In this document: in pieces, positions 37,871 to 64,000 of the stretch
Numbering within the stretch: the first letter of the stretch is position 1
Layout of the letters: the number at the start of each line of letters is the position of its first letter
DNA from: Zygnema circumcarinatum SAG 698-1b
Lineage: Eukaryota; Plantae; Zygnematophyceae
Assembly (NCBI GenBank): GCA_037447605.1
Contig: CM074816.1
Span: 1,262,283 to 1,326,282 of the forward strand
Direction of reading: 5' to 3'
Length of the DNA: 64,000 bases
Position numbers and translations under genes: made by a program
Notes under the pieces: model-generated
Database searches by the model: none
What the model saw: only the letters and a program-made list of their open reading frames with translations
What the model was told of the DNA's origin: nothing

Positions 37871-40800
37871 ATGGCCTCCCGCTTCCGCCGGGAACAGCGG
37901 CGGCGGCGGTGGGCGGACAGCGGCACCGTCTTCCCGGCCTACTACGTGCCAGCTGTCGAGCGCCTGCTCCCCCCCGCTGGCCGCCATATGGCAGCCTCTG
38001 CGCTCGGCGTGGAGCTTCTGCAACTGACACGTGTCGGCTCGAGCTATGCAGAGATGGCGCATATGAAGGCGCTTCCACCCGCTCTTGGAGCTCTGTGGGA
38101 GGCTGCCCTCCTCTCTCCCTCAGGGAGGGAGGGGGAGAGGAAGAGGGAGAGAGAAGCCTCTCTCGAGGCGGACTTGGCAGCAGGTTTGTGCTCAGCAGAG
38201 ATCTATTGTCTAGTTACTTAGTTAGTTAGTCTAGTTAGTTATAACTTTGTCTAGAATTGAGTGACTTAAGCGCTTCATGGAGTTGAGGGGCATTTGGATA
38301 AAGCCAACCCTAAGTCTAGTGTGCGTGCTGACATTTTATCCGAATTCCGGCCTTTCCTGACGTAATGTCGTTTTAACCTTGACTGTACAACTAGTGTTAA
38401 CTTCAATAATAGCTCCGCTACATTGACAAGTGTTAAGTTTTACTGTAGCTGTGCTACAAACCTTAATTGGAAGACTGATAAGACTTCTATACGAATTCAA
38501 ACTGTAAAATTGCCTTCAGCTCGAATCCTAATCCCTCAATTTCCTAAATTCTTTACTCTAACTTTAAAATTTATCCCTGATTAACCTTAAGAAGCCTCTT
38601 GCCTTTTATCAGGATCAATTTTGAAGCTTGAAAAAACTTGCAGGCTCATTAATATTGGACCTTTGCTCTGTTTTTCCATGTTTGCATGTTTCAGGTCTGC
38701 GTCTCTATGTAGAAATTCTGTTCTTGGAAAATTCCAGACCAATACATAGAAGCCTGTTGGCCTATCTCATAAAGTTCCCAAAGGAACACGTGTCACGCCT
38801 AGATGACGCCATCTGGCAGTGCTGTCACGACTACGCTCCGGGAGGCTCCAAGTATCGACGATTTGCTGTGGGGGGAGCAGCGGCTTCCCTTACAGCTGCC
38901 CAGTTTCAGGTACATTTCTTGCTAACTTAGAAGGAGATATCTTGCCAACTGAGAAGGAAATTTCTTGCTGACTAAGGAGGAGATTTCTTTCTGCTACAAA
39001 GACTACTGGGTTCTTCGCGTCGAGCTGAGTTTTTGAGGTTTTTTTGGGCTTTCTGAGTGCACTTCTGTTGACTTGTGGAGAGGCAGCTACGTCTGTATGG
39101 TTCACATGTATATGTTTTTTCACTTGGGATCGCTGTATTTGAAGATTAGATTGACTGTGAAAGCAGTTTTTGACATCACTTCTTCCGCTCACATTTCTTC
39201 CCTTTGGGTCTGAAAGGGTTAATTTCTGGAGATTGTATACTTTACTTCCATTCTGTATCATTTTCACTCATTTCACTTTGATTTGTACAGAACAGGTTTT
39301 GCTAGACGGTGCGGGACGCAAATGTGCAAGAATTCTTGTCAAGGCGCTGAGCTTCGACATTTCATATGCGTTGGCCGTTTCACGGAGCGGAAGCCGTTTA
39401 ACGCCAGCGAACATGGATGACTGTCAGGAGGCTCTCTCATCCATCTACTACCTCCTGCAGCGCTTTCCAGAGCAGTTCAGATCACCCCCCATTCTTGAGC
39501 CTAAAAATCCGGATCAAATAAATCGAATTAATGAACTGGACACGTTAATAAGTCAGCCTGACGCTACACTAGGAGTCGGGAGCACTTTCATTGGAGAAGA
39601 TGGCGTGAGAAGGGAGGAAAGAGGAGTGAGAGCGGCTGTGACTGATATTGAACCAAAAGAAGCATTCGAGGCAGTAGTGAATGTCTTATTAGACGTTCTT
39701 CAGATGGGAGTATTGACACAAGACTGTTCCGTGGCAGCTGCCGTCAGTCTATGTGCCGCAATTCAGTTGTCAGTTCATTCGTCTGCCGAGCCGGAGTTTC
39801 TTTCTCTATATTTGGCTCGATCCTTTTTTTCGGCAGAAAAGGAGGAGAAGTGGGGAAGCCATGGAGGTAGAGTGAGAGAAGAGGATGAGAGAGGCGAGAG
39901 CGGAGAACATTTGGAGTTCAGCCTGCTGGACGGGGAAAAGGGAGAGGCGACGGAGGAGAATGCAGTAGAGGCGGTAATTAGGGTTTGCCGTAAGAGTACT
40001 TTGAAAAAGGAAGCGAAAAAATTTGCAGAATTTAGTCATCTATGTTGGCTGCGAGGTCTCCTCACCGCGATCCCTAGAGAAGCTCTATGTGCGCATCTCC
40101 TGTGGAGGAAAACTGTAGGCTCCAATCTGAGTCATGGAAACGGAAGCGTTGACTCTAGTTTGACCGGTCCAGCATGTGATCGTAGGCGTTCTTGGACTCT
40201 GCTTTTCGACGGAATTTTACCCAAAATCTGTCGTTACTGTGAACTGTCCACGGACGCACATTTCAAGTTCCATGCAGTTACATGTCTGCAAATATGTCTT
40301 CAGCAGATGAAAGCTGCAATTTTGGATGGAACGGAAGCGGCTATGGCTGACGTGGCATCAGAGAAGGCTGGCCTGAATTTTCCGGCCTATGAGGCGGTGC
40401 CAGGTGGCACGATCTCACGAATTCTGCAGATGGTCTGGAATAATTGGGAAGATCCGGTCGCTCAAACTGTAAAGCAGGTCCAAACCGTTTTTGATTTGTT
40501 GGTAGATGTAGTGCAGGCTGTGTCTGCGACAAAGAAAAGCAAGAATCAGAGAATTCTTAAGAACTCTACAAATCTTGATAAAGTGAAGCACGTTGAAAGC
40601 CATGAAACTGTGGTTGTAGGAGCAGAGGGGGTGAAAGGCTTTAGTTCAGACACGTGTGAGTGGGACGAGGAAGGAGGTCTCGGATTAGGGGAATTAGAGC
40701 AAGGATGGATGGATGAAGAAGCGCAGGAAGCGGAAGAAACTAATAAAAATACTCCTTCTGATGCTGAGCTGATTATAGTAGAATCTACGGGTAAATTAGG

Positions 40801-43800
40801 GTTAGAAGAGGACCTTCTTAAGGACGGGGCATGGATTGACACAAAGCTCTTCTTAGAGAGAATAGCAATGGACCTTTTGCAAGCAGGAGGGCATCGGAAA
40901 GGGCGATACGTACCTCTTGCCTCTCTCTCCTTCAAAATTGGGGCTTTGAAATGTTTACAAATGGACCCGTATTTGCTGCACGAATCGATTGCGGCTATTT
41001 CTGACGACGGAGTTTGCTGTTCTGTCAGTTCCTTTTTAAAGACTTTCTTAGAAAGACTGAGGGAGGAGTGTCAAAGGGAGGAGGGAGGAGCCTTGGAAGG
41101 GGATGCCAGGTGGCGCCGTCTCTGGGTGCCACCTGTCCTGAAAGCCCTCCTTGGAACCAACGGAAAACTTCGTGCAAATGTGACAACATATGCACTTCCT
41201 GTTGGTCTGCTAATGGATAGAGACAGCCTTTGGCCTATGGTAGCCTTCATTCTTGACATGGAACACCGAAAAGATGAAGGGGTGAGAGTGGTAGGAGAGA
41301 GAGATGCTGAGATGGGAGTGGAGGGGGCAAACCCTAGATTTCTGAAAAACCCCAGAGGCCCTAAAAAGGGGTGGAGTGAACTGGAGGGGGCGGAGGGGCT
41401 ACCACTTGATGCTTCTGCAGATCAGAGAGTGGGAGGTTTGGTGTCAGTTTTGAAGGTAGCACGGATTTTAGCTCTTGTAGATGGAGGAATGGAGAATCTG
41501 TTTGAGGAGCCTCAGGTAGAAGTAATAGAACATTCGAAATTTGGGGTGAAATTGACATGGAACGGGACATGGAACAAGGGCTTGTCTGAAATGGAACAAA
41601 TGGAGGGTGCTTTGGTGGAAGGAAATGGGGGAGAGAGAGAGAGGGGGAGGGAGAGGCAGCGGGGCAGGAGAGAGAGGGTCGGTGGGGGGATTCAGATTCC
41701 TTTTGTGTTTTTGAGGAGTTCTGTGATTCACAAAGACGATGGATTGAGAGTGGATGCTGCAGAACTCCTTTCTTTGAATCCGCGAACTTCTGCGATGCCA
41801 ACTGTACTAGAACTGAAACTGCTGAGGTTTGCGATTCCATTCAATTTACGGTGCTCCTCAACGGCATTCCGTATGAGGTGGACTAGCCTCATGAAGAAAT
41901 TCTTTGTACGGATGCAAAATGCTCTGGAGAGGAAAGCTGTGGAAGCTGCAAAAGCGACAGGAAATTTGAAGGTATCTGAAAACCTCAAGAATTCCAGGAA
42001 CTCTAAAGTTTCGGGCGTGAGACTGAAAACAGCGAGTGTGGAGAGGAGGAAGATGCTGAGAAAATGGGGTTTCGGGGGTGAGGGAGATGTGGGTTTGAGA
42101 GGAGGGGTGAGGGTTTCAGAGCGAGAGGAGGATGATGAGGCCGGGAGCGATGGCTTCATAGAGAGAGAGAGAGAGGAGGGGGAGGAAGGAGATGAGAAAG
42201 AAGCGAGTGTGGGAGAAGTGCAGGAGTTCTTGATTTGGTTAACCAATTTACTCACTAATTCCCTTTACCCGGGGGCACCTTATGAGCGGAAAAACATGGC
42301 AATGGAGCTTTATAATGCGATTATTGAAGTATGGAATCCTGTGGAGGCCCTTGCATCATGGGAACGTGCAAAAACCAGAAACAGTTTAGCAAATACGGTA
42401 GTGGATAACGGAACAGCAAAGACGGAAGAGCTGCATGGAGAGCCGTTCTTTCCGTTCCAAGAAGGCCTGCTTTCGTCAGGGGGAACTTTTGCCCTAATTG
42501 GAGCGGCTGTGGATAGCTGGGATAGGCTGAGAGAGGGATCGTTTACTCTTCTGCAAAAATACCCTACTCCCTTTCCAGGTGTGAACGGAGCTCCGGAGGT
42601 AGAGGATATATTGAAGTGGGTCAAAGGACTGATTTTGAGTCCGAGAGTGAGAGAGGCAGATGCAGGGGCTCTCATCCTACGGCTCATATTTAAGAAGTAC
42701 GTGATCGAGCTCGGATGGAAGGTTAAGATGCATCCTGAACCGAAAGTCGTATGTTTGAAAGGAAAGGGAGATGATGAGGGTGAGAAGGGACACTTGGCAG
42801 ATGCAGGTGATGCCATGTGGCAGTACGTGGAATCTTTGAATGATTGGTTGGAGGCAGGAGTGGTAGAGGGAGAGAGGGATCTAGTGAGTGCGTGCAAACG
42901 TAGCTTAGTGCATGGGATTTTAGTGGCTATTAGATATAGTATGGAGGAGATAGAGTGGAGTTCAAGGCCGGTAAGGAGGAGGAGGGAGGAGTTGAGAGTG
43001 GCGTTAGAGAGGTTGCTTGGCCTCGTATTGAGAGTGACTTCTTTGGCCCTGTGGGTGGTCTCGGCGGATGCATTGAAGGTACCGAGAGAGAGGGAGGGAG
43101 AGGAGAGGGATGGAGTGGGAGGGGGAGGGAGTGGGGGAAAAGTGGAGGGAGAAGCGAGGGTGCTGAAGAAGGAGAGAGAGGTGGATGTTTGTCTGGATGT
43201 GAGTGAGGGCAATGAGGTCGTGGCGGAAGGAGAGATGTACGAGATAAACAATGGAGAAGAGATGTGGGAAGAGGGAGAGGATTTGGAGGAATGGGAGGGG
43301 GATATGGAGGGAGAGGGGCTGGCTCCAAGAGAGCAAATGGTTATGGTGGGATGCTGGCTGTCGATGAAGGAGGTAGAACCCTAAACCCACGCCCTAACCC
43401 TAATACCCTCAAAATTCCTGGAAAGGGAGAAATTAAGCTAAATTTCAGTTGCAACGGGGTGATATTCTATAGATTTTCATGTTAAGCGATCGCTAATGTG
43501 CTTTCGAATTATTGTTTTGCAAGTCCGGTCATCACGATTGTAAACTTTGGAGTCTTAAATTCCTTATTTAGCTGATGTTTTTCTGTGTTTCAGGTGAGCC
43601 TGCTCCTTGGCTCCTTAGCTCACGCAGTTCCGTTGCCGGGAGCGGAACCGGATACCAACGGAAATACGGAGGACACAACGGTTAACGGAGACACAGAGCC
43701 GGACATGGAACCCGACGGCGAACAGCCGTTGCTCAATGCACAACAGTTGCAGGTGAACCCCCCTCTCCCACGACCCTAAGAACCCAATTTTATCATAATT

Positions 43801-46800
43801 ATATTTCCAAACAACGCTAAAAAACTCTGATCAGAAAATCTAGACTCTGAAATCGAAAAGAAAAACCGTAAAACTCAGGACTATCAAAAAGCCGGAACCC
43901 TACAAACGGTAACATTCAAATGCTCTTGAAAATGTTGAATTCTGCATAGCTAAGTGCTGGCTATGCAGAACTACCGGATTCGTCATTTTGTTGGCCCGAA
44001 ATTTTTTTTAAGCCCGAAAAACCCAAGAAATCCGGACTTGCCCTTTGTTCGTTCTTTATTCTACTTGTCTCTCTATTTATTTTTCCCTGTAAGCAGGCGA
44101 TAGGGGAGCATTTTCTGAGCGTGCTACTGGCTCTAAAGCATAATGGAGCCATAGATAAAACGAGAGCAGGCTTTATTGCTCTCTCCGAGCGATTGCTTCG
44201 ATCCGAGTCCTTTGAGTGAGTTTCTATTACAAAGTGTGAGAAAGAAGCAAAAAAAGCATTTACATTGTACGTTTTCTCGTCTTGAGAGGAACTTGAACTT
44301 CAAAATATCAGCTTGTTTATGAATGAGGCTTACAAATTCTCCCTCTCCCTCCCATCTTCTTCTCTTTCTCTTCTCCTCTCTCTCTCTGTTCCCCTCCCCT
44401 TTTCCTTTCTCCTTTACTCTCCCTTCTCTTCTCCCTCCCTATTCTCTCGTTGCCTCTCTCGCTCCCGTCTTTCCATTCCCCCCCCCCCCCTCTTCTCACC
44501 CTCCCCCCCTCTCTCTCTTTTCTCCCCCTCCCCCTCTCCCGCTCCCCCTCCCAACCTTCCTTCCCACCCCCTCCTCCCACTCCCCCCTTCCCCACTCTCT
44601 CCCTCTCCCCTCTCCCCTCCTGCCTCCCTCCCCCTCCTCTCCCTTCCCCCCTCTCGCCCTTCTCCCCCTCCCCCGCTCCCACCCCCCCTCCCCTTCCTCC
44701 TCTTCCCTTCCCCCCCTCCCNNNNNNNNNNGACAGGGAGTGGGAGGGGGAGAGGGAGGCGGAAGGGGAGAGGGAGAGGGAGAGCGTGAGAGAGAGGGAGA
44801 GGGGGAGGGAGAGGGAGCAAGACGGGGGGAGGGAGAGGGGGAGCGTGAGAGAGAGGGAGAGGGGGAGGGAGAGGGAGCAGGACATGGGGAGGGGGAGGGA
44901 GAGGGAAACAGAGAGAGGGAGAGAGAGGCAGGGAGGGAGAAGTCAGACGGCATGGTTCCGCAAGTGCACGCATTCAACTCCCTCCGCGCGGCCTTCAACG
45001 ACGCCAACCTCACCACCGACATGTCCGGCTTCTGCGCTGAGGGCCTGCAGGCGGCCATTGCCGCCTTCTCCTCGCCCCATTGGGAGGTGCGGAACAGCGC
45101 CTCTCTCGCCTTCACAGCGCTTGTCAATAGGACGCTCGGGTTCATGAATATCATGCAACAGGAAACGGCTCGGAGAGCAATCACTGGGTTCGAGTTTTTC
45201 CACAGGTGGGCTCTCTATCTCTCTCTCACTCACTCTCTCTTTCGCTCTCTCGCTTTCTCTCTCCCTCTCTCTTCCTTTTTCGTCACCTATCTTCTTCTCC
45301 TTTTCAGACGTTCTGCAATGGGGTGTTTTCTATCTGGACATCAAGGCCTCCGACTTCATCTTCCCCTGCAAAATCTCTGAAGATATAAGATCCAAACTAA
45401 CCTAAAACCCTTGTTCTGACAAATGCAGGTATCCCTCCCTCCACCCTTTCCTCTTGGGCCAATTGGAAGTCGCCACGTGTCTCCTCGACGGACCCGCAGG
45501 CGCTCCCTCGACGTCTGAACCGCTTCACCCCAGCCTTTGCCCTGTACTGATTCTGCTTTCCCGCCTGAAGCCATCCGTAATCAATACCAAGCAAGACGAT
45601 TGGCTGAGCCCTTCCGCCTTCCTCCCATTCGTCAGCCGCTGCGCCCTCCAACGGAATCTCCATGTGCGCGTTTTAGCGTCGCGGGCCCTCGCGCCACTTG
45701 TCGCCTCCCAGGACGTGACACGTGTCCTCCTCGGAATGGCTCACATTCTCCCCCTCGTTGCCGATGGGCCCGGTCAGAATCCAGACGGAACGGCGAATCC
45801 GATTGCGCCACGTGGCAGTGGGGACCGGCTGGAAGACGGGGGAATGCCAAGTGGCGGGCAGGGATTGGGTAAACTGAGAACGTACAACGCTGTGCATGGA
45901 ACCTTACTGCAGATGCACTCGTTGCTGGTGACGTCAAGGAGCTCTATTGCTGACGCTGAAGCAAGGGAGAGGATCATACTATTGCTTCTACCGGAGCTGG
46001 AGGCTCGGGATTGGCTCGGAAACCCATATAAATGTAAATGCTATCTAGTAGTGCGTGAGTTTCTGAGGGTTTTGGCCGTGCTGGGAGAGCTGGGAGAGGG
46101 AGAGAGAGAAGAGGGAGGAGAGATAGGAGAGAGAGGAGGGAGAGGAGAGAAGAAGGGGCGGAATTTGAACGAGAGTCGGCCTATCGATAGTTATCCTGAA
46201 AACCCTAAAAGCCTTGAAATTATTGCAAACCCTAAAGACCCCAAAGTTTTGGCGACGGAGGTAGCAACGATATCTCTCGATATGGAGATTAGGAGGGAGT
46301 GGGGGGTTGTGGATGCAACATTCGTTAAATTGAGGGAACAAGCGGCGGAAATTTATTTCAAGATGGGACTCTTTTTGGAGGGGGATGAGGTCCACTTTGG
46401 TGAATTTTTTCAACGTCTCAAAGCAGCACTAGAGGACGAAATGTATGAAGTAAGGTTGGCTGCATTGAAGTTTTTGAAGAAGGCAGCTTCGGGAAGCATA
46501 GGTGGAGGAGTTTCCGGGCAGGCGGAAAAAGTTTTGGCCTGTGTTCAACCAATCCTAGTCGAGCTTTTGGTCAAAGAGGGGCATCCGCAATGCATGCGTC
46601 GAATTTTGCAGGTTATGTTCATGTGGAGCTCAAGAACTGGAAATTTTTGGACTCGGGCAGGTGGGGAAAACAGGTCGGTAGAAGCAGAAGATAGCTTTGA
46701 GGGGCAGACCAATGGGGGGTTGACAGGTGGATCTCCGAACGAAAGTTTTTCCTTGCAGCTTTGGAAAAAGATACTAGAGATTTTTGAACGTTCTCGACAA

Positions 46801-48309
46801 ATGAAAACGAAGGAAATTGCTCTGAAGTGTTTGGGCATCTGCTTGCGAAACATTTTGCCTTCTGTGAGGCAGGCCGTCTGGGGGGATGTATCTGGTCAAG
46901 ATTTTGTCCAATGGGAGGACGCAGAATCTGTACTTGCCACGTGGCAGGAGCTGATTCGTCGGCACAGCAGGGCAGATCAACCTGCGACTTTCAGGAGAGC
47001 TACAGCTGACGCAATTATTGCGTCACACTTGCTGAGAGAGGGAAACTATGTGGGTGAAAAGTGGGAGGAAACCCTAAAAAAGTTGTATTTCGTTGATACC
47101 CTGAATGGAATTAGGGCATTCTCAGAGGGGAGAGATGCGGAGAGAGACAAGTCGGGAATCACGGCAGGGAGGGAGAGTGGGGGAGTGGGAGCGATGGAGG
47201 GAGAACGAGACGGGGCTTGGAGAGAGAGAGAGGAGCGAGAGACGAGAAGTATTGGGCAAAAGGAAAAAGTGAAGATATATTTGGACGCAGTTTTACGGAT
47301 ATGGGCGTTATGTGTGCGAATGTTGGAGGATGAAGATTTGGATTTGAGGCAGAAATTGGCGACTTCAATGCAAGGAGTGGTAGAGGAGCAGATGGGTGTG
47401 AGGGGGGTGGGAGAGAGCGCCATGCGGGAGGAGATGGGTCAAGAGAGAGAGAGAGAGAGGGAGAGGGAGAGAGAGGGGATGTGGGTTCAAGAGATGATTC
47501 CTGCACAAGAGGAGGTAGTGCTAGAACTTAGCTTCGATTATATGTCTATGTGCTTTTGGTGGTGGGACCCATACTTGGATATTTTGGCCGAATGGGTGAT
47601 GGGTCCGGTAGGGCTTGGAGGAGAGGGAGAGCGAGGTACTGATTTCGATTTGGTGAAGAGGCTTTTTGATAAGGAGATTGACAACCATCATGAGGAGGAG
47701 CTTCTTTTTGTTCAACTCTCATGTCTTCATTTGAAGAAGGTTATTCAAAGGAGGGGAGAAGAGGAGGAGAGGGAGAGGGAGAGGGAGATGCAGATGGAGA
47801 GAGTGGCGGGAGAGGGAGGATGGGGCAGGGATGAGCAGCCGGAGGTGAGTCAAGTTGGGTCGAAGCTTGTGGAGAAGGTGAGGGATTGGAGGAGGAAGTT
47901 TTTGGAGAGGTTTAAAGTTTATGTGAACGTGGTAGTGAAGATGGAGAGGAGGATGAAGTGGGTGGGAGGGGTAACGAACCATCAAGATGCCTTCATGCTC
48001 CTCCTTAGGACACTGCTCGGGCTGTTGACTTTGGTTGACCCAACGGGGGAAGAGAGGGGGGGAAGCTCCTTGGAAGCTTCCCTTCAAGAGAGAACGGAAG
48101 AGGAGAATATACGAAGGGAGTTGAGAGAGGCGACGGCGGTGCTGTTGGCTTTACGGCTTCACTCTCTGGTGGGGAATACTCTTTTTATGGTTCTGGAGGC
48201 CTACGAGACGAGAATGAGTACTCCCCAAACTTTGGGTGCCGAGTCCGTGAAGTTGCGTCTGGGCGCCATGTGGTCGAGAACGTTCAATCCGCTCTTTTTG
48301 CTCGCGTGA
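37871..48309 (+). CDS. THADA: THADA / Trm732 homolog (tRNA 2'-O-methylation cofactor, DUF2428); incomplete at an N gap
   Basis: Exons 37871-38183, 38695-38909, 39296-43372, 43594-43752, 44097-44215, [gap 44721-44730]..45205, 45429-48309. Motifs match recalled plant THADA: YVEILFLENSRPIHRSL, WNNWEDP, HRKGRYVPL, VDSWDRLRE, LSPRVREADAGAL, VGCWLSMKEVSLLLG, KHNGAIDKTRAGF, VHAFNSLRAAFND, WEVRNSA, TGFEFFHRYPSLHPF. Confidence 0.93.
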
Positions 48310-49796: not shown

Positions 49797-54064
<4,268 letters not shown>

Positions 54065-59334: not shown

Positions 59335-61561
59335 CATTTTCCCCAGAAATTCGGAAACTCTTGCGCAGGCCTCTACAGTGAAGGGAATCCGTGTACGGAA
59401 TCCCTGAAATCCCTTAAAACGATTCTGGGCCATCCCGTATTTTTTTGGAGGGACGTTAAAAGGAAATAGGATTGTCAGAAATGACGTAATCGTACGAAAC
59501 ATAGACGCTCACTGTTTACGGAAAGCACAGCCACGGCTGAAATCTCAGTAAGGCTTACTGACGTTTTCTATGTCTTACATGCAATTTTTTTCTTCCTCCC
59601 CCTCTCTCCCTTTTCCTCCTCTCGTTTTCTTCTTACTCTCTCGTCAATCTGCAGGTGTCGGCGTGGTCGGGCTGCAATTTTGGAGCATGAAATGGCACAA
59701 AAGTTGAAAAGCAACAAGTTGCAGCACGACCACGAATGATTGAAGACCACTTTGGTCCCAAGGTCACTCGCTGCTCGGGACCGGGCAACAAGCTCTGTCT
59801 TTTTGTGCGTGTGTCGTTTCCACGTTTTTTGGGCGAGAACACGAGGTTGGCAGAAACCTACGAGACCTACGCTTCGTGTGAAATATTTTGATTGCTTTTC
59901 TTGAGCGATCTCAACGTATCGCATCTCAGATTGCGCAGAGGGAATCCGCAGACAGCCAATCAGCGCCGGCCTGAATGTACGGAAACGTCGTCTCCACAAG
60001 CCGACAGCTGAGCGGTCCTGTTTTTGTCGTTAAGGACTGTGGGATGTTGCACGTGTCGCACGCGTGCGGAGGGAGGGCTGTCTAATAAAAAAATTCCGCG
60101 CCTCCCAACTTTGTCGGTTGTGCTCCCGCGGCTTGGGATGGCATGCATGCGCCATGTAATGTAACGCGGACGATTTTCATAATCTTGATCAAGGTCAAGA
60201 CGACAAGGTCACTGACATTGGTTCAGAATCTCAACGCGCAGAGTCCACTCAGCAGTGCGGTACAGCACCGCTGTCTCCCGCCGCGCAGCACTCTGAGACG
60301 ACGCGGTTGATTGGCTTCCCAACCCAAGGATCCACCACTCTTTACCCGCCCCTTCTAACGATATCCTCAGCGCATCGTGGCCCTTGATCTGCCGCTATTG
60401 ATCCCTTCCCAAACCCTGCCCGCCACAACAAGCTCACCGTTTCACACGTGTCGGAAGATTGGATCCGGATCCTACCGCTCGTGTCGTTTTGTACGAACCT
60501 CAGAAGGACAAATAGAGGGAAAGCTGGCATTTAAATCGACGAGAAACCGACAAAACCCATCTATCATTGCAGCGAGAGCATTGAATTGCGGTCCAACAAC
60601 ACGGGCAGCTTGAGCTGGCGTCTGTAGAAGCGACAAAACAACGACGTGGGGTCCACCGGTACATTTAGCCCTCTCTTGTACGTTTGGGCGGCAAGACCTT
60701 GGCACCGTCGAAGACAGCTACCTCCGTACAGTAACCGACAAAATGGCCGTACATATTAATAACGAAAAGTGATACGAAGTACGAATAGTCAAGATTGTAT
60801 GTACGGCCACCAGTCATCCGTGTCCGTGCACTGATTATTCGGCGCTTGTATCAGCGGCTCCGCCCTGTGCAGTGAACTGCATCGGGACGTGGGCGGGAGA
60901 GGGAGAGGGAGGGAGAGGGAAGGGGTGAGGGAGGGGGAAAGAGTGGGGGAGGGAGTGGGAGAGGGAGAGAGCGGGAGGGAGAAGGGAGAGGGAGAGGGAC
61001 AGGGAGAGGGAGAGGGAGAGGGAGAGGGAAAGGGAGAGGNNNNNNNNNNAGAGGGAGAGGGAGAGGGAAAGGGAGAGGGAGAGGGAGAGAGGGAGAGGGC
61101 GAGGGAGAGGGAGAGGGAAAGGGGAAAGGGGGAGGGAGGGAGGGTGGGGGAGGGAGGGGGAGGGAGGGAGGCAGAGAGTGAGAGAAAGGGGGAGAGTGAG
61201 AGGGAGGGGATAGGGAGGGAGAGAGAGAGAGGGGGAGAGAAAGAGTCAGAGGGAAGAGGGACAGTCGGAGGTATTGGGGGAGAGAGAGAGAGGGAGAGGG
61301 AGGGAGAGAGTGAGGGAGAGTTCGACGTAGGGAGGGAGAGTCCGAGGTAGGAAGAGCGGTGAGGGAGAGAGAGGGAGAGATAGCGAGAGTGTCCGAGGTA
61401 GGGAGGGAACGAGAGAGCGAGAGAGGGAGGGAGAGATAGCGGGAGTGTCCGAGGTAGGGAGGAAGAGAGAGAGAGCGCGAGAGAGAGAAAGGTGAGGAAT
61501 CCCACGCCCAGTAGCGCGGGCGTCGAGTGAGAGAGCCCGCGATAGTCGAACTGAGCGAGAG

Positions 61562-62788
61562 ATGGCGCCCCCCCCCGTCGCCCCCTCCCCCTCCCTCTCC
61601 CTCTCCCTCTCCCTCCTCCCCCCCCTCCTCCTGGCGCTGCTCCTCGTCTCCCTCCCCTCCCCCGCAGCCGCCCTCCTCCCTGCGGACCTGTTCCCGTACG
61701 GCACCGCGAACGGCGACAAGGTCCTCCACTGCGACGACTGCGCCAGCGCGGAGATCGCGCTGCCCGGCGCTATGACCTTCTTCCGGAACCGGGTCACGGC
61801 CCTGCGCGTGTCCGCCAACGGCTACTTCGGGCAGATGTCCTCTTCGGTCATGAACGGAGCCGTGGACGCGTGCGTGGGCTCTGTCTCTGTGCCGCTAATT
61901 GTTCTGCTTTTGGGCTCACATCATCAATCGCTCTCGATTTTAGGGTTTTTACGGTTTTAGGGTGTTTAGGGTTCTAAAGTTTTAGGGTCTTAGTGTTTTT
62001 ACGGTTTTTAGGGTTTCATTGTCATAGTTTCTTTTCATATTGTCTGATTTTGCCTTTAGCTGACAATTGTGCTATTGTGCGAGCGAGCATGCAAGAATTT
62101 CACGGCCAATGTCGGATTTGGTTTTTTGGTCAATTCAATTTACTTTGTTTTGGAAATGTAAAAGAAGGTATTCAATGCATGTTTTGCACTCTTTTTGTCA
62201 TATAATCAAACCGAAAATTCTCTATGTGCAGGTATTCGACAGGATTACCGTACATCGCTCCGTTCAATTACGACATCGGTGGGTGACTGAATGTGGAACA
62301 TCTTCCAGATTTACACTCGTTACTTTATGCTTCTTGTATCTTAGTTGTAGTTATTCATTTTTTATTTTTAGTTATTTACTTATTTATTTATTTTTTAGCA
62401 ACCCTGTCATCTTAACTCAATTGAACCCAGACGTGAACTCGTCCAATCTTTAACCCTAGACTCAGAGAACCTTGGTTTTCAGTGAGATAATTTTTTCCTT
62501 CCATCTGCTTACTGTTTTCTCTATCTTCTACCGGTTTTCATTTTTTTTTATTTGACACGTCTCGTCAACATCTAACCTGTTTCTTCCCTCTGCTGCAGAC
62601 ACGACCGGCAGTGGACTCGGATCCGTGTACTACAGAATGGTCAGCAGTTTGAGTCGCCCGTCGGACCTCGCCCGCCTCTCGCTCGATGTGAAGACCTCCT
62701 TTCCCGCAGATTTCGAGGCTCAAATTTTCCAACCGGTCGGAGGGTTCGTGGTTTCATACATCAATGTGTCGTACATTGACGGTGACGG
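61562..62788 (+). CDS. 5' part of a secreted NIDO-domain (nidogen G1-like) protein; continues beyond the window
   Basis: Exons 61562-61869, 62232-62278, 62599-62788, phase-consistent. Signal peptide LLPPLLLALLLVSLPSPAAA, then LFPYG..GD..L..DD..S..I.L....FF...VS.NG, PYIAPFNYDIDTTGSGLGSVYYR and SFP...FQPVGGFVVSY..V, matching the recalled NIDO profile. Confidence 0.85.
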
Positions 62789-62819
62789 GTGAGTAACCAT
62801 TCATCTCTCTGACGATGAA

Positions 62820-63989
62820 GTCATGTTTCCCCTCTCAGTGAAGTCTTCCTTACTGTCCCCAATCTTGCTAACCATCAATTAAAAGCTGATGCATCAAGTA
62901 CAAAAAGCGGGATCTTTTGTTTGCTTGTTCATTTCAGCAACTAACCATTTCAACTCAATTGTGCTAAAACGATGACTCAAGTGAACGCTGCTTTTGCTTC
63001 GCTCCTTTGTAGAATTGTTTTGCATGTCCAATTCTACAAACCAAGAAATTCCACGCCAATGTTGCTTTATTTGTTTGAGTGCCAAATGACTACCTTGATC
63101 GACGCAAAATATATGCGGTGTCTTGAGAAATTTACCTTCATATATATGCTCAAGTACCAACCTAATCGCTCTATGGAGAATTTGATTTTGAGGTATTACT
63201 TTTGGTATGATACGTATACATCGAGTGCACTCAACCCGAGCAACCATAGGGTGGAACAAGCGAACGCAGTGAGCGCCTTGGTCAAACAAACAGCGACCAA
63301 CATGTGAGTGACGAACCTGTCGACCAATCGGTTGAAATACTCGCGACCAAACGGTTTGCGAGTGGTACCACGTTCGTTGTTTGCCGTACCTACGTTTCGT
63401 CTCAAGCGCCTTCAGATCAGCACTACGGCGCTTGTTCTGCACTCCCTTCGGTCGCCTGTTACTTCGTAACCCTTCGGTCACGGTGAAACAAGCGAACGCA
63501 GTGAGCGCCGCGCGAGCGGAGCTGGCTTTGAGCGAGGCGCTCAACACACTTTTGTTGGTCGTTTGCTTCTCCCTTAGTTCATGTCTGTTAACAACAATCC
63601 TGTGTTTGGTAGTTGGTTGTAGCTTATAATTTCCAGTGTATAAGCGTTGTGCTACCTTATCAAACCATGAAGTAATGGGCGTTACCGTTTGGTCCCCAAG
63701 TTTCTCCATCACTCCATGCAACTTTCTTACCTTGCCTAATTTTGATTGGTTTAAATGTTTGTAAGCAGCTAGTAGCACTGTTGGGTCAGCAAGCACTTCT
63801 AACACGTTGGTGTATTTGCCGTTTTTTTGGACAAACAATTCGAACTTTTGTTTAGGATATTCGCTGCTATCATTAGCGGAAACAGTCCGGGCTAACCTAT
63901 TCGAAGGGCAGTTATTAACAGGCAATGCTCCACAGCAGCACTTTGCGTCTACGACGTTTAGCTGTTTGCTCAATTTAGGGTAATGTAGC
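62820..63989 (-). pseudogene. Organelle-derived group II intron-encoded RT/maturase fragment (probable NUMT) inside an intron of the NIDO gene
   Basis: AT-rich 359-aa ORF open to the gap at 63990. RT0/1-like LADPTVLLAAY..WFDKVAQRLYTGNYKLQP; RT2/3-like RAIRLVLEHIYEGKF..H.F..GSHLALKQIK..W.GISWFVELD. A frameshift after KDPAF continues as LMHQLLIDG then a stop. No YADD region precedes the host exon. Confidence 0.85.
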
Positions 63990-64000
63990 NNNNNNNNNNC

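Follow-up and report, generated by a model that had tools for sequence, protein, structure and literature searches.

From position 61562 on, the window (the whole 64-kb stretch of DNA analysed here) carries what is probably the 5' portion of a gene native to the nucleus of a streptophyte alga; in this gene a leader would be followed directly by a NIDO-type domain. Judging from single-exon searches and from the order of the conserved motifs, the three exons of this gene almost certainly encode the first ~60% of the domain. The locus is a new but incomplete member of the NIDO family, which is already known from streptophyte algae.

The NIDO domain (Pfam PF06119 / SMART SM00539), which takes its name from nidogen G1, is found in animal nidogen G1, alpha-tectorin, SNED1, mucin-4, Mesh and DEX-1. 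In nidogen/entactin proper it is followed by EGF, G2 beta-barrel and thyroglobulin type-1 modules and by an LDL-receptor YWTD propeller. The domain lacks an established function, also in the animal proteins (bioRxiv 10.1101/2020.07.27.223107).

Gene structure and NIDO homology

The features of the locus are collected in Table 1. The split codons at the two exon junctions (GC/G for Ala and G/AC for Asp) make the reading frame continuous across the three exons, which are GC-rich whereas the introns are AT-rich. The translation of exon 1 consists of a hydrophobic leader followed by LLPADLFPYGTANGDKVLHCDDC...VSANGYFGQ..., and the exon 1 sequence after the 37-residue leader reads LLPADLFPYGTANGDKVLHCDDCASAEIALPGAMTFFRNRVTALRVSANGYFGQMSSSVMNGAVD. 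Exon 2 is translated as YSTGLPYIAPFNYDI, preceded by the split-codon Ala, and the translation of exon 3 starts with (D)TTGSGLGSVYYR (in a longer stretch, TTGSGLGSVYYRMVSS) and contains FQPVGGFVVSYINVSYIDGD and FQPVGGFVVSYINVSYIDGDG in its later part. All the peptide strings quoted in the preliminary description were recovered in these three GT-AG exons, in one frame. Intron 1 contains, at 61938-62016, about nine degenerate units of the plant telomere type (TTTAGGG / TTTTAGGG), that is, an interstitial telomere-like array.

Table 1. Features of the NIDO locus and its flanks; positions are those of the window.
Feature	Positions	Strand	Details
Upstream (GGGAGA)n array	60890-61490	.	~600 bp; assembly gap 61040-61049 inside
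Putative start codon and leader	61562-61672	+	37 residues; Pro/Ser/Leu-rich n-region, core LLPPLLLALLLVSL, AAA/L cleavage-type site
Exon 1	61562-61869	+	Putative start ATG at 61562; donor GTGCGT at 61870
Exon 1 remainder, N-terminal part of the NIDO-type domain	61673-61869	+	LFPYG..GD..HCDDC..FF..VSANGYF
Intron 1	61870-62231	+	GT..AG, 362 nt, AT-rich; acceptor AG 62230-31
Exon 2	62232-62278	+	47 nt; donor GTGGGT at 62279
Intron 2	62279-62598	+	GT..AG, 320 nt, AT-rich; acceptor AG 62597-98
Exon 3	62599-62788	+	Donor GTGAGT at 62789
Presumed intron 3	62789-64000	+	Opens at the GTGAGT donor, reaches the window end
Open frame, 359 codons	62894-63973	-	Weak match to group II intron RT/maturase, TIGR04416

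The conserved motifs of the family appear at the locus in the family order: LFPYG-GD-DD, FF..V..NG..F, IAPxxxDxD, G.VYYR and FVV[ST][WY]. For comparison we used a profile (A1) of 20 aligned NIDO units, each with a ~40-residue N-terminal extension, which covers 218 positions. Four of its five invariant columns are kept (the D of DD, the N and G of NG, and an F). In the fifth, all 20 reference units have the Trp of FVVTW, for which exon 3 has Tyr (FVVSY). In the core motif IAPxWxDxD, encoded by exon 2, the Trp is replaced by Asn (IAPFNYDID). The segment from YYR to FVVxY in exon 3 measures ~35 residues, and the DD motif of exon 1 is flanked by two Cys (HCDDC).

Homology tests were run on single exons, each searched separately, exon 2 being too short for a Pfam scan. 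The Pfam NIDO model gave no match at E<=10 for exon 1 (102 aa) or exon 3 (62 aa) scanned singly. By phmmer, the mature part of exon 1 (65 aa, 61673-61867) matches 19 proteins at E<1e-3 among 1.84 billion cluster representatives, many of these library-wide E-values being sums over several units. The gathering threshold of PF06119 (25 bits) is reached by 10 of the 17 exon 1 matches that were scanned, with E-values down to 1e-211, and several of the Pfam-positive proteins carry two to five NIDO units. The NIDO-positive matches named are P0002, P0003, P0004, P0005, P0011, P0013, P0014, P0016 and P0017, with P0006 marginal, just short of the cut-off. In the positive proteins, the stretch matched by exon 1 abuts the start of the Pfam NIDO domains and runs into it (e.g., in P0016, exon 1 matches residues 27-73 and the Pfam NIDO match begins at residue 64). 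The best matches over a single stretch are P0018 (35.6 bits), P0011 (25.5 bits) and P0009 (23.1 bits).

Three of the 19 phmmer matches, P0001 (the top match, 3328 aa, with IQ motifs), P0007 and P0019, were rejected as sums of many weak repeats.

When compared with profile A1 by HHalign, exon 1 aligns to columns 4-58 (probability 97.4%, E 9e-12), and in hmmsearch it scores 46-48 bits, values that are partly circular because the A1 units were picked by their likeness to exon 1. The Pfam status of the matched proteins and the result for exon 3 are independent of this choice. Exon 3, a marginal match when taken singly, aligns to columns 89-135 (probability 59%, E 9.4e-5), and its phmmer comparison with the sea-urchin NIDO protein P0013 matches both units of that protein colinearly. 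On the hmmsearch profile the exons occupy positions 4-64, 74-82 and 89-134, respectively; they are ordered and non-overlapping, the gaps between them equal the family spacing, and jointly they reach from about position 4 to about 134 of the 218. By itself exon 2 is too short to yield a usable score (-1 bit), and it is its position and spacing that fit the family.

As a chance control, a profile HMM of NIDO units was run against every stop-to-stop fragment (2442 in total) from the six frames of the 64-kb window. Exon 1 came first (46 bits, E 7e-13) and exon 3 second (about 7-7.9 bits, E 0.31), both on the same strand and colinear on the profile, and nothing else stands out. In the ESM Atlas, exon 1 retrieves a NIDO cluster on top at 0.94, with 12 of the 30 matches; exon 3 gave no usable match there. 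The NIDO homology asserted in the preliminary description is, in sum, supported by phmmer, HHalign and hmmsearch on single exons, next to the negative outcome of Pfam on the same exons.

On the structural side, PDB sequence searches with exons 1 and 3 returned chance-level matches only (E>0.1). AlphaFold2 on the A1 alignment of NIDO units reached a pLDDT of 58, with nothing below E 0.17 in a Foldseek comparison of the model with the PDB, and no fold is assigned to the NIDO units on these values.

Probable native origin and comparison with animal nidogens

The nearest match of exon 1 is an animal nidogen-type exon, to which it is 43% identical over 58 residues. This protein, P0018, is a 79-residue product encoded on a 2.9-kb Logan contig (L001), taken to be from a non-human animal, and a profile scan of the contig reveals three NIDO exons in colinear order, with wording typical of animal nidogens (e.g., APFLADIDTSRGRGQIYYR). 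The statement in the preliminary description that the sequence tracks animal nidogen G1 is therefore a fair one. The algal locus has the same motifs as the animal NIDO units, in the same order, and the long, ~35-residue spacer between YYR and FVVxW of the animal units is common to algal exon 3. As in animal nidogens, the algal domain would be N-terminal, directly after the leader, and it starts at the equivalent place. In contrast to the animal units, the algal gene has two conserved Trp replaced (by Asn and Tyr) and carries the Cys pair of HCDDC, which animal units lack and which occurs in the metagenomic proteins P0009 and P0015. The EGF, G2 beta-barrel, thyroglobulin and YWTD modules are not seen in the window, where ~60% of the NIDO domain is visible, so that the gene is not to be regarded as a nidogen orthologue.

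The introns of the animal gene on L001 lie near profile positions ~46-50 and ~107, whereas those of the algal gene lie near ~65, ~84 and ~136. The two genes have none of these positions in common, a finding that speaks against the algal gene being a recent copy of an animal one. The same difference, together with an identity to animal sequence of only 43%, makes it very improbable that the locus is foreign (animal or bacterial) DNA in the assembly or a chance resemblance, even though single exons have no Pfam match and the best single-stretch match of exon 1 comes from an animal nidogen-type gene. Chance would also have to produce, on a single strand, three pieces that are colinear and correctly spaced and that include ranks 1 and 2 among the 2442 fragments; a foreign origin would have to accommodate exons embedded in AT-rich GT-AG introns and CT/GA microsatellites of a kind shared with the 50.5-52.7 kb region of the same window. 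In the preliminary description, contamination was considered unlikely and the gene native, and this assessment is borne out by the AT-rich GT-AG introns, by CT/GA microsatellites that recur elsewhere in the window and by the placement of the introns, which is unlike that of the animal gene.

The affinity of the genome itself is streptophyte. A THADA/Trm732 homologue on the plus strand at 39170-48309 has unusually long uninterrupted exons, with open reading frames of 1404 and 951 codons, and can serve as a taxonomic marker of the genome. The best named relatives of the 1404-codon frame are bryophytes and a lycophyte (38-40% identity); its other relatives include Closterium (33-34%) and a prasinophyte (31%), and none is closer. 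Such a set of relatives fits a streptophyte outside the land plants whose own proteins the database does not contain.

Between this homologue and the NIDO locus, at 50473-52728, lies a pure (CT)n/(GA)n array of more than 2 kb, with a GC skew reaching -1.0 in 51001-52000. No link was found between the NIDO gene and the "dumbbell HRGP" located 50 kb away, with which it had been connected in the preliminary description.

Leader and boundaries of the gene

The putative start codon at 61562 is the sole in-frame ATG upstream of the NIDO domain. The leader that it would open has a hydrophobic core and an AAA/L site five residues before LFPYG, and we regard it as a putative signal peptide. Its composition is atypical. 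A (CCCTCT)n tract (61568-61643) makes up the first ~25 codons, so that the n-region of the leader is encoded by a microsatellite, and this n-region has no basic residue. The tract is the reverse complement of the adjoining upstream (GGGAGA)n array, with inverted-repeat arms between the two of up to 65 nt at 71-88%. The array itself probably represents the promoter/5'-UTR region. Of the earlier description of the product as secreted, the hydrophobic leader with its AAA/L site stands; secretion as such is a prediction made from a leader that is unusual and microsatellite-coded.

The same features could be read differently, with the NIDO unit as an internal part of a larger gene. The CT-rich stretch at 61568-61664 would then be a polypyrimidine tract, the intron would end with the CAG at 61665-61667, the next exon would start at 61668, and the true first exons, together with the genuine signal peptide, would be located 5' of the GA array. 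We consider this arrangement, including its upstream first exons, rather unlikely. It would account for the strong pyrimidine tract followed by a CAG five codons before LFPYG and for a leader that is microsatellite-coded and lacks a basic n-region, but in the frame opened by the ATG at 61562 the domain is immediately preceded by a hydrophobic core and a site of the AxA type. Moreover, the upstream plus strand of the window showed no exon resembling a NIDO unit or a signal peptide, and the place of any upstream exon is occupied by the 600-bp GA array with its assembly gap.

At the 3' side, the part of the domain that is missing amounts to ~40% (~85 profile positions), which is absent from the 1.2 kb left in the window. 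For the C-terminal half of the domain (FQxVL...NY..I...G...PG.W.F, positions ~135-218), no fragment above 1.4 bits was detected on the plus strand of 62789-64000, a segment that ends with a run of N at 63990-63999; an Rfam search of 61500-64000 gave no match. Under the gene model that we favour, in which the 5' part of a native gene is present, the NIDO domain would be split by two short GT-AG introns, a third intron would open at 62789, and the remaining ~40% of the domain, with whatever follows it, would lie beyond the window. The gene would on this model be complete and expressed from the ATG at 61562.

The segment downstream of exon 3 contains, on the opposite strand, an open frame of 359 codons, residues 263-319 of which match NCBIfam TIGR04416 (group II intron RT/maturase) at E 6.5e-4. 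This frame has no Pfam match and no homologue among 5.8 billion proteins, and a direct repeat of 28 nt occurs in it (at 63250 and 63482). The frame may represent a decayed piece of organelle-derived DNA.

Such a remnant bears on a further possibility, namely that the locus is a truncated or decaying 5' NIDO fragment, cut or disrupted, e.g., by organelle-derived DNA downstream, with no full domain behind it. We regard this as not very likely, though it deserves more weight than an internal unit of a larger gene. A fragment would be in keeping with the lack of a further NIDO-coding piece in 62789-64000, with the weak RT/maturase remnant there, with the replacement of the reference-invariant Trp by Tyr and of the Trp of APxW by Asn, and with the lack of near-identical proteins in public sets. 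Against this, the frames of all three exons are open, their splice sites are canonical and four of the five invariant residues are retained; the exchange of Trp for Tyr is conservative, and an intron of 1.2 kb is not a long one. As for the public sets, the library of 1.84 billion cluster representatives contains no protein whose identity to exon 1 exceeds 45%, the exon 1 ORF had no exact match on record in public assemblies, and a metagenome scan for related loci produced 600 pattern matches, none of which was confirmed.

Algal and bacterial relatives and proposed role

According to Feng et al. (Nat Genet 2024; PMC11096116), filamentous Zygnema and algae outside Phragmoplastophyta have NIDO, whereas land plants and three unicellular Zygnematophyceae lack it. 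Loss was judged likelier than gain in that study because such families occur in algae outside Phragmoplastophyta. The report takes the form of a line in a Pfam inventory, with no gene structures, architectures or function, and the supplement text has no per-species counts (PMC11096116). The proteins listed there belong to the same domain family and to the same part of the tree as the present locus. The preliminary description had hinted at an undescribed algal toolkit and had named prior records of NIDO proteins as widespread among streptophyte algae and plants as evidence that would tell against its reading. Documentation of this kind is in part provided by the inventory (PMC11096116), and since it lists NIDO for Zygnema, "undescribed" is too strong a word.

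The bacterial or metagenomic surface proteins P0014, P0008 and P0012 have the N-terminal half of the domain in common with exon 1. P0014 (metagenomic, 1500 aa) combines a subtilase (Peptidase_S8), fn3 and NIDO-like units, whereas P0008 and P0012 are S-layer-homology proteins with NIDO-like repeats. The sole solved structure matched by the NIDO profile is that of the Flavobacterium gliding adhesin RemA (PDB 8gl6_D, E 6.6e-7). The bacterial and metagenomic NIDO proteins are extracellular and surface-attached, and in most of them the domain is repeated in tandem. Units of the short type (P0014, P0009 and P0015) have a segment from YR to W that is ~25 residues shorter than in algal exon 3, whose long form is that of the animal units and of the other, long-form metagenomic ones.

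Since all the NIDO relatives found, among them animal matrix and mucin-type proteins, are extracellular or surface proteins, we propose that the algal domain is a secreted N-terminal binding head. The product would most likely enter the secretory pathway, with the leader removed near AAA/LL, and the NIDO domain would be exposed as the N-terminal head of a protein of the cell wall or cell surface. This head may bind a component of the wall or matrix. NIDO is located at the N-terminus in animal nidogens and alpha-tectorin as well, which agrees with the proposed position of the head.

On a broader scale, we tentatively suggest, while regarding it as the weaker bet, that NIDO is an ancient eukaryotic extracellular module that was kept and multiplied in streptophyte algae in the form of wall or surface proteins and was lost towards land plants. 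With the same reserve, the algal units would be of the long, animal-like type rather than of the short bacterial type. The present locus would then be one more member of this set, with its C-terminal partner beyond the window. By itself it adds little to the question of ligand and ancestry, because it comprises a leader and 60% of one domain and because algal NIDO is already in print. The broader interest lies in the family: NIDO proteins of the algae most closely related to plants provide a second system, genetically far removed from the animal one, for asking what NIDO binds, and they are relevant to whether modules of the extracellular matrix are older than the divergence of the animal and plant lineages. 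If NIDO is indeed an ancient module, animals and the sister lineages of plants would have drawn on one common ancestral binding domain for part of their extracellular matrix.
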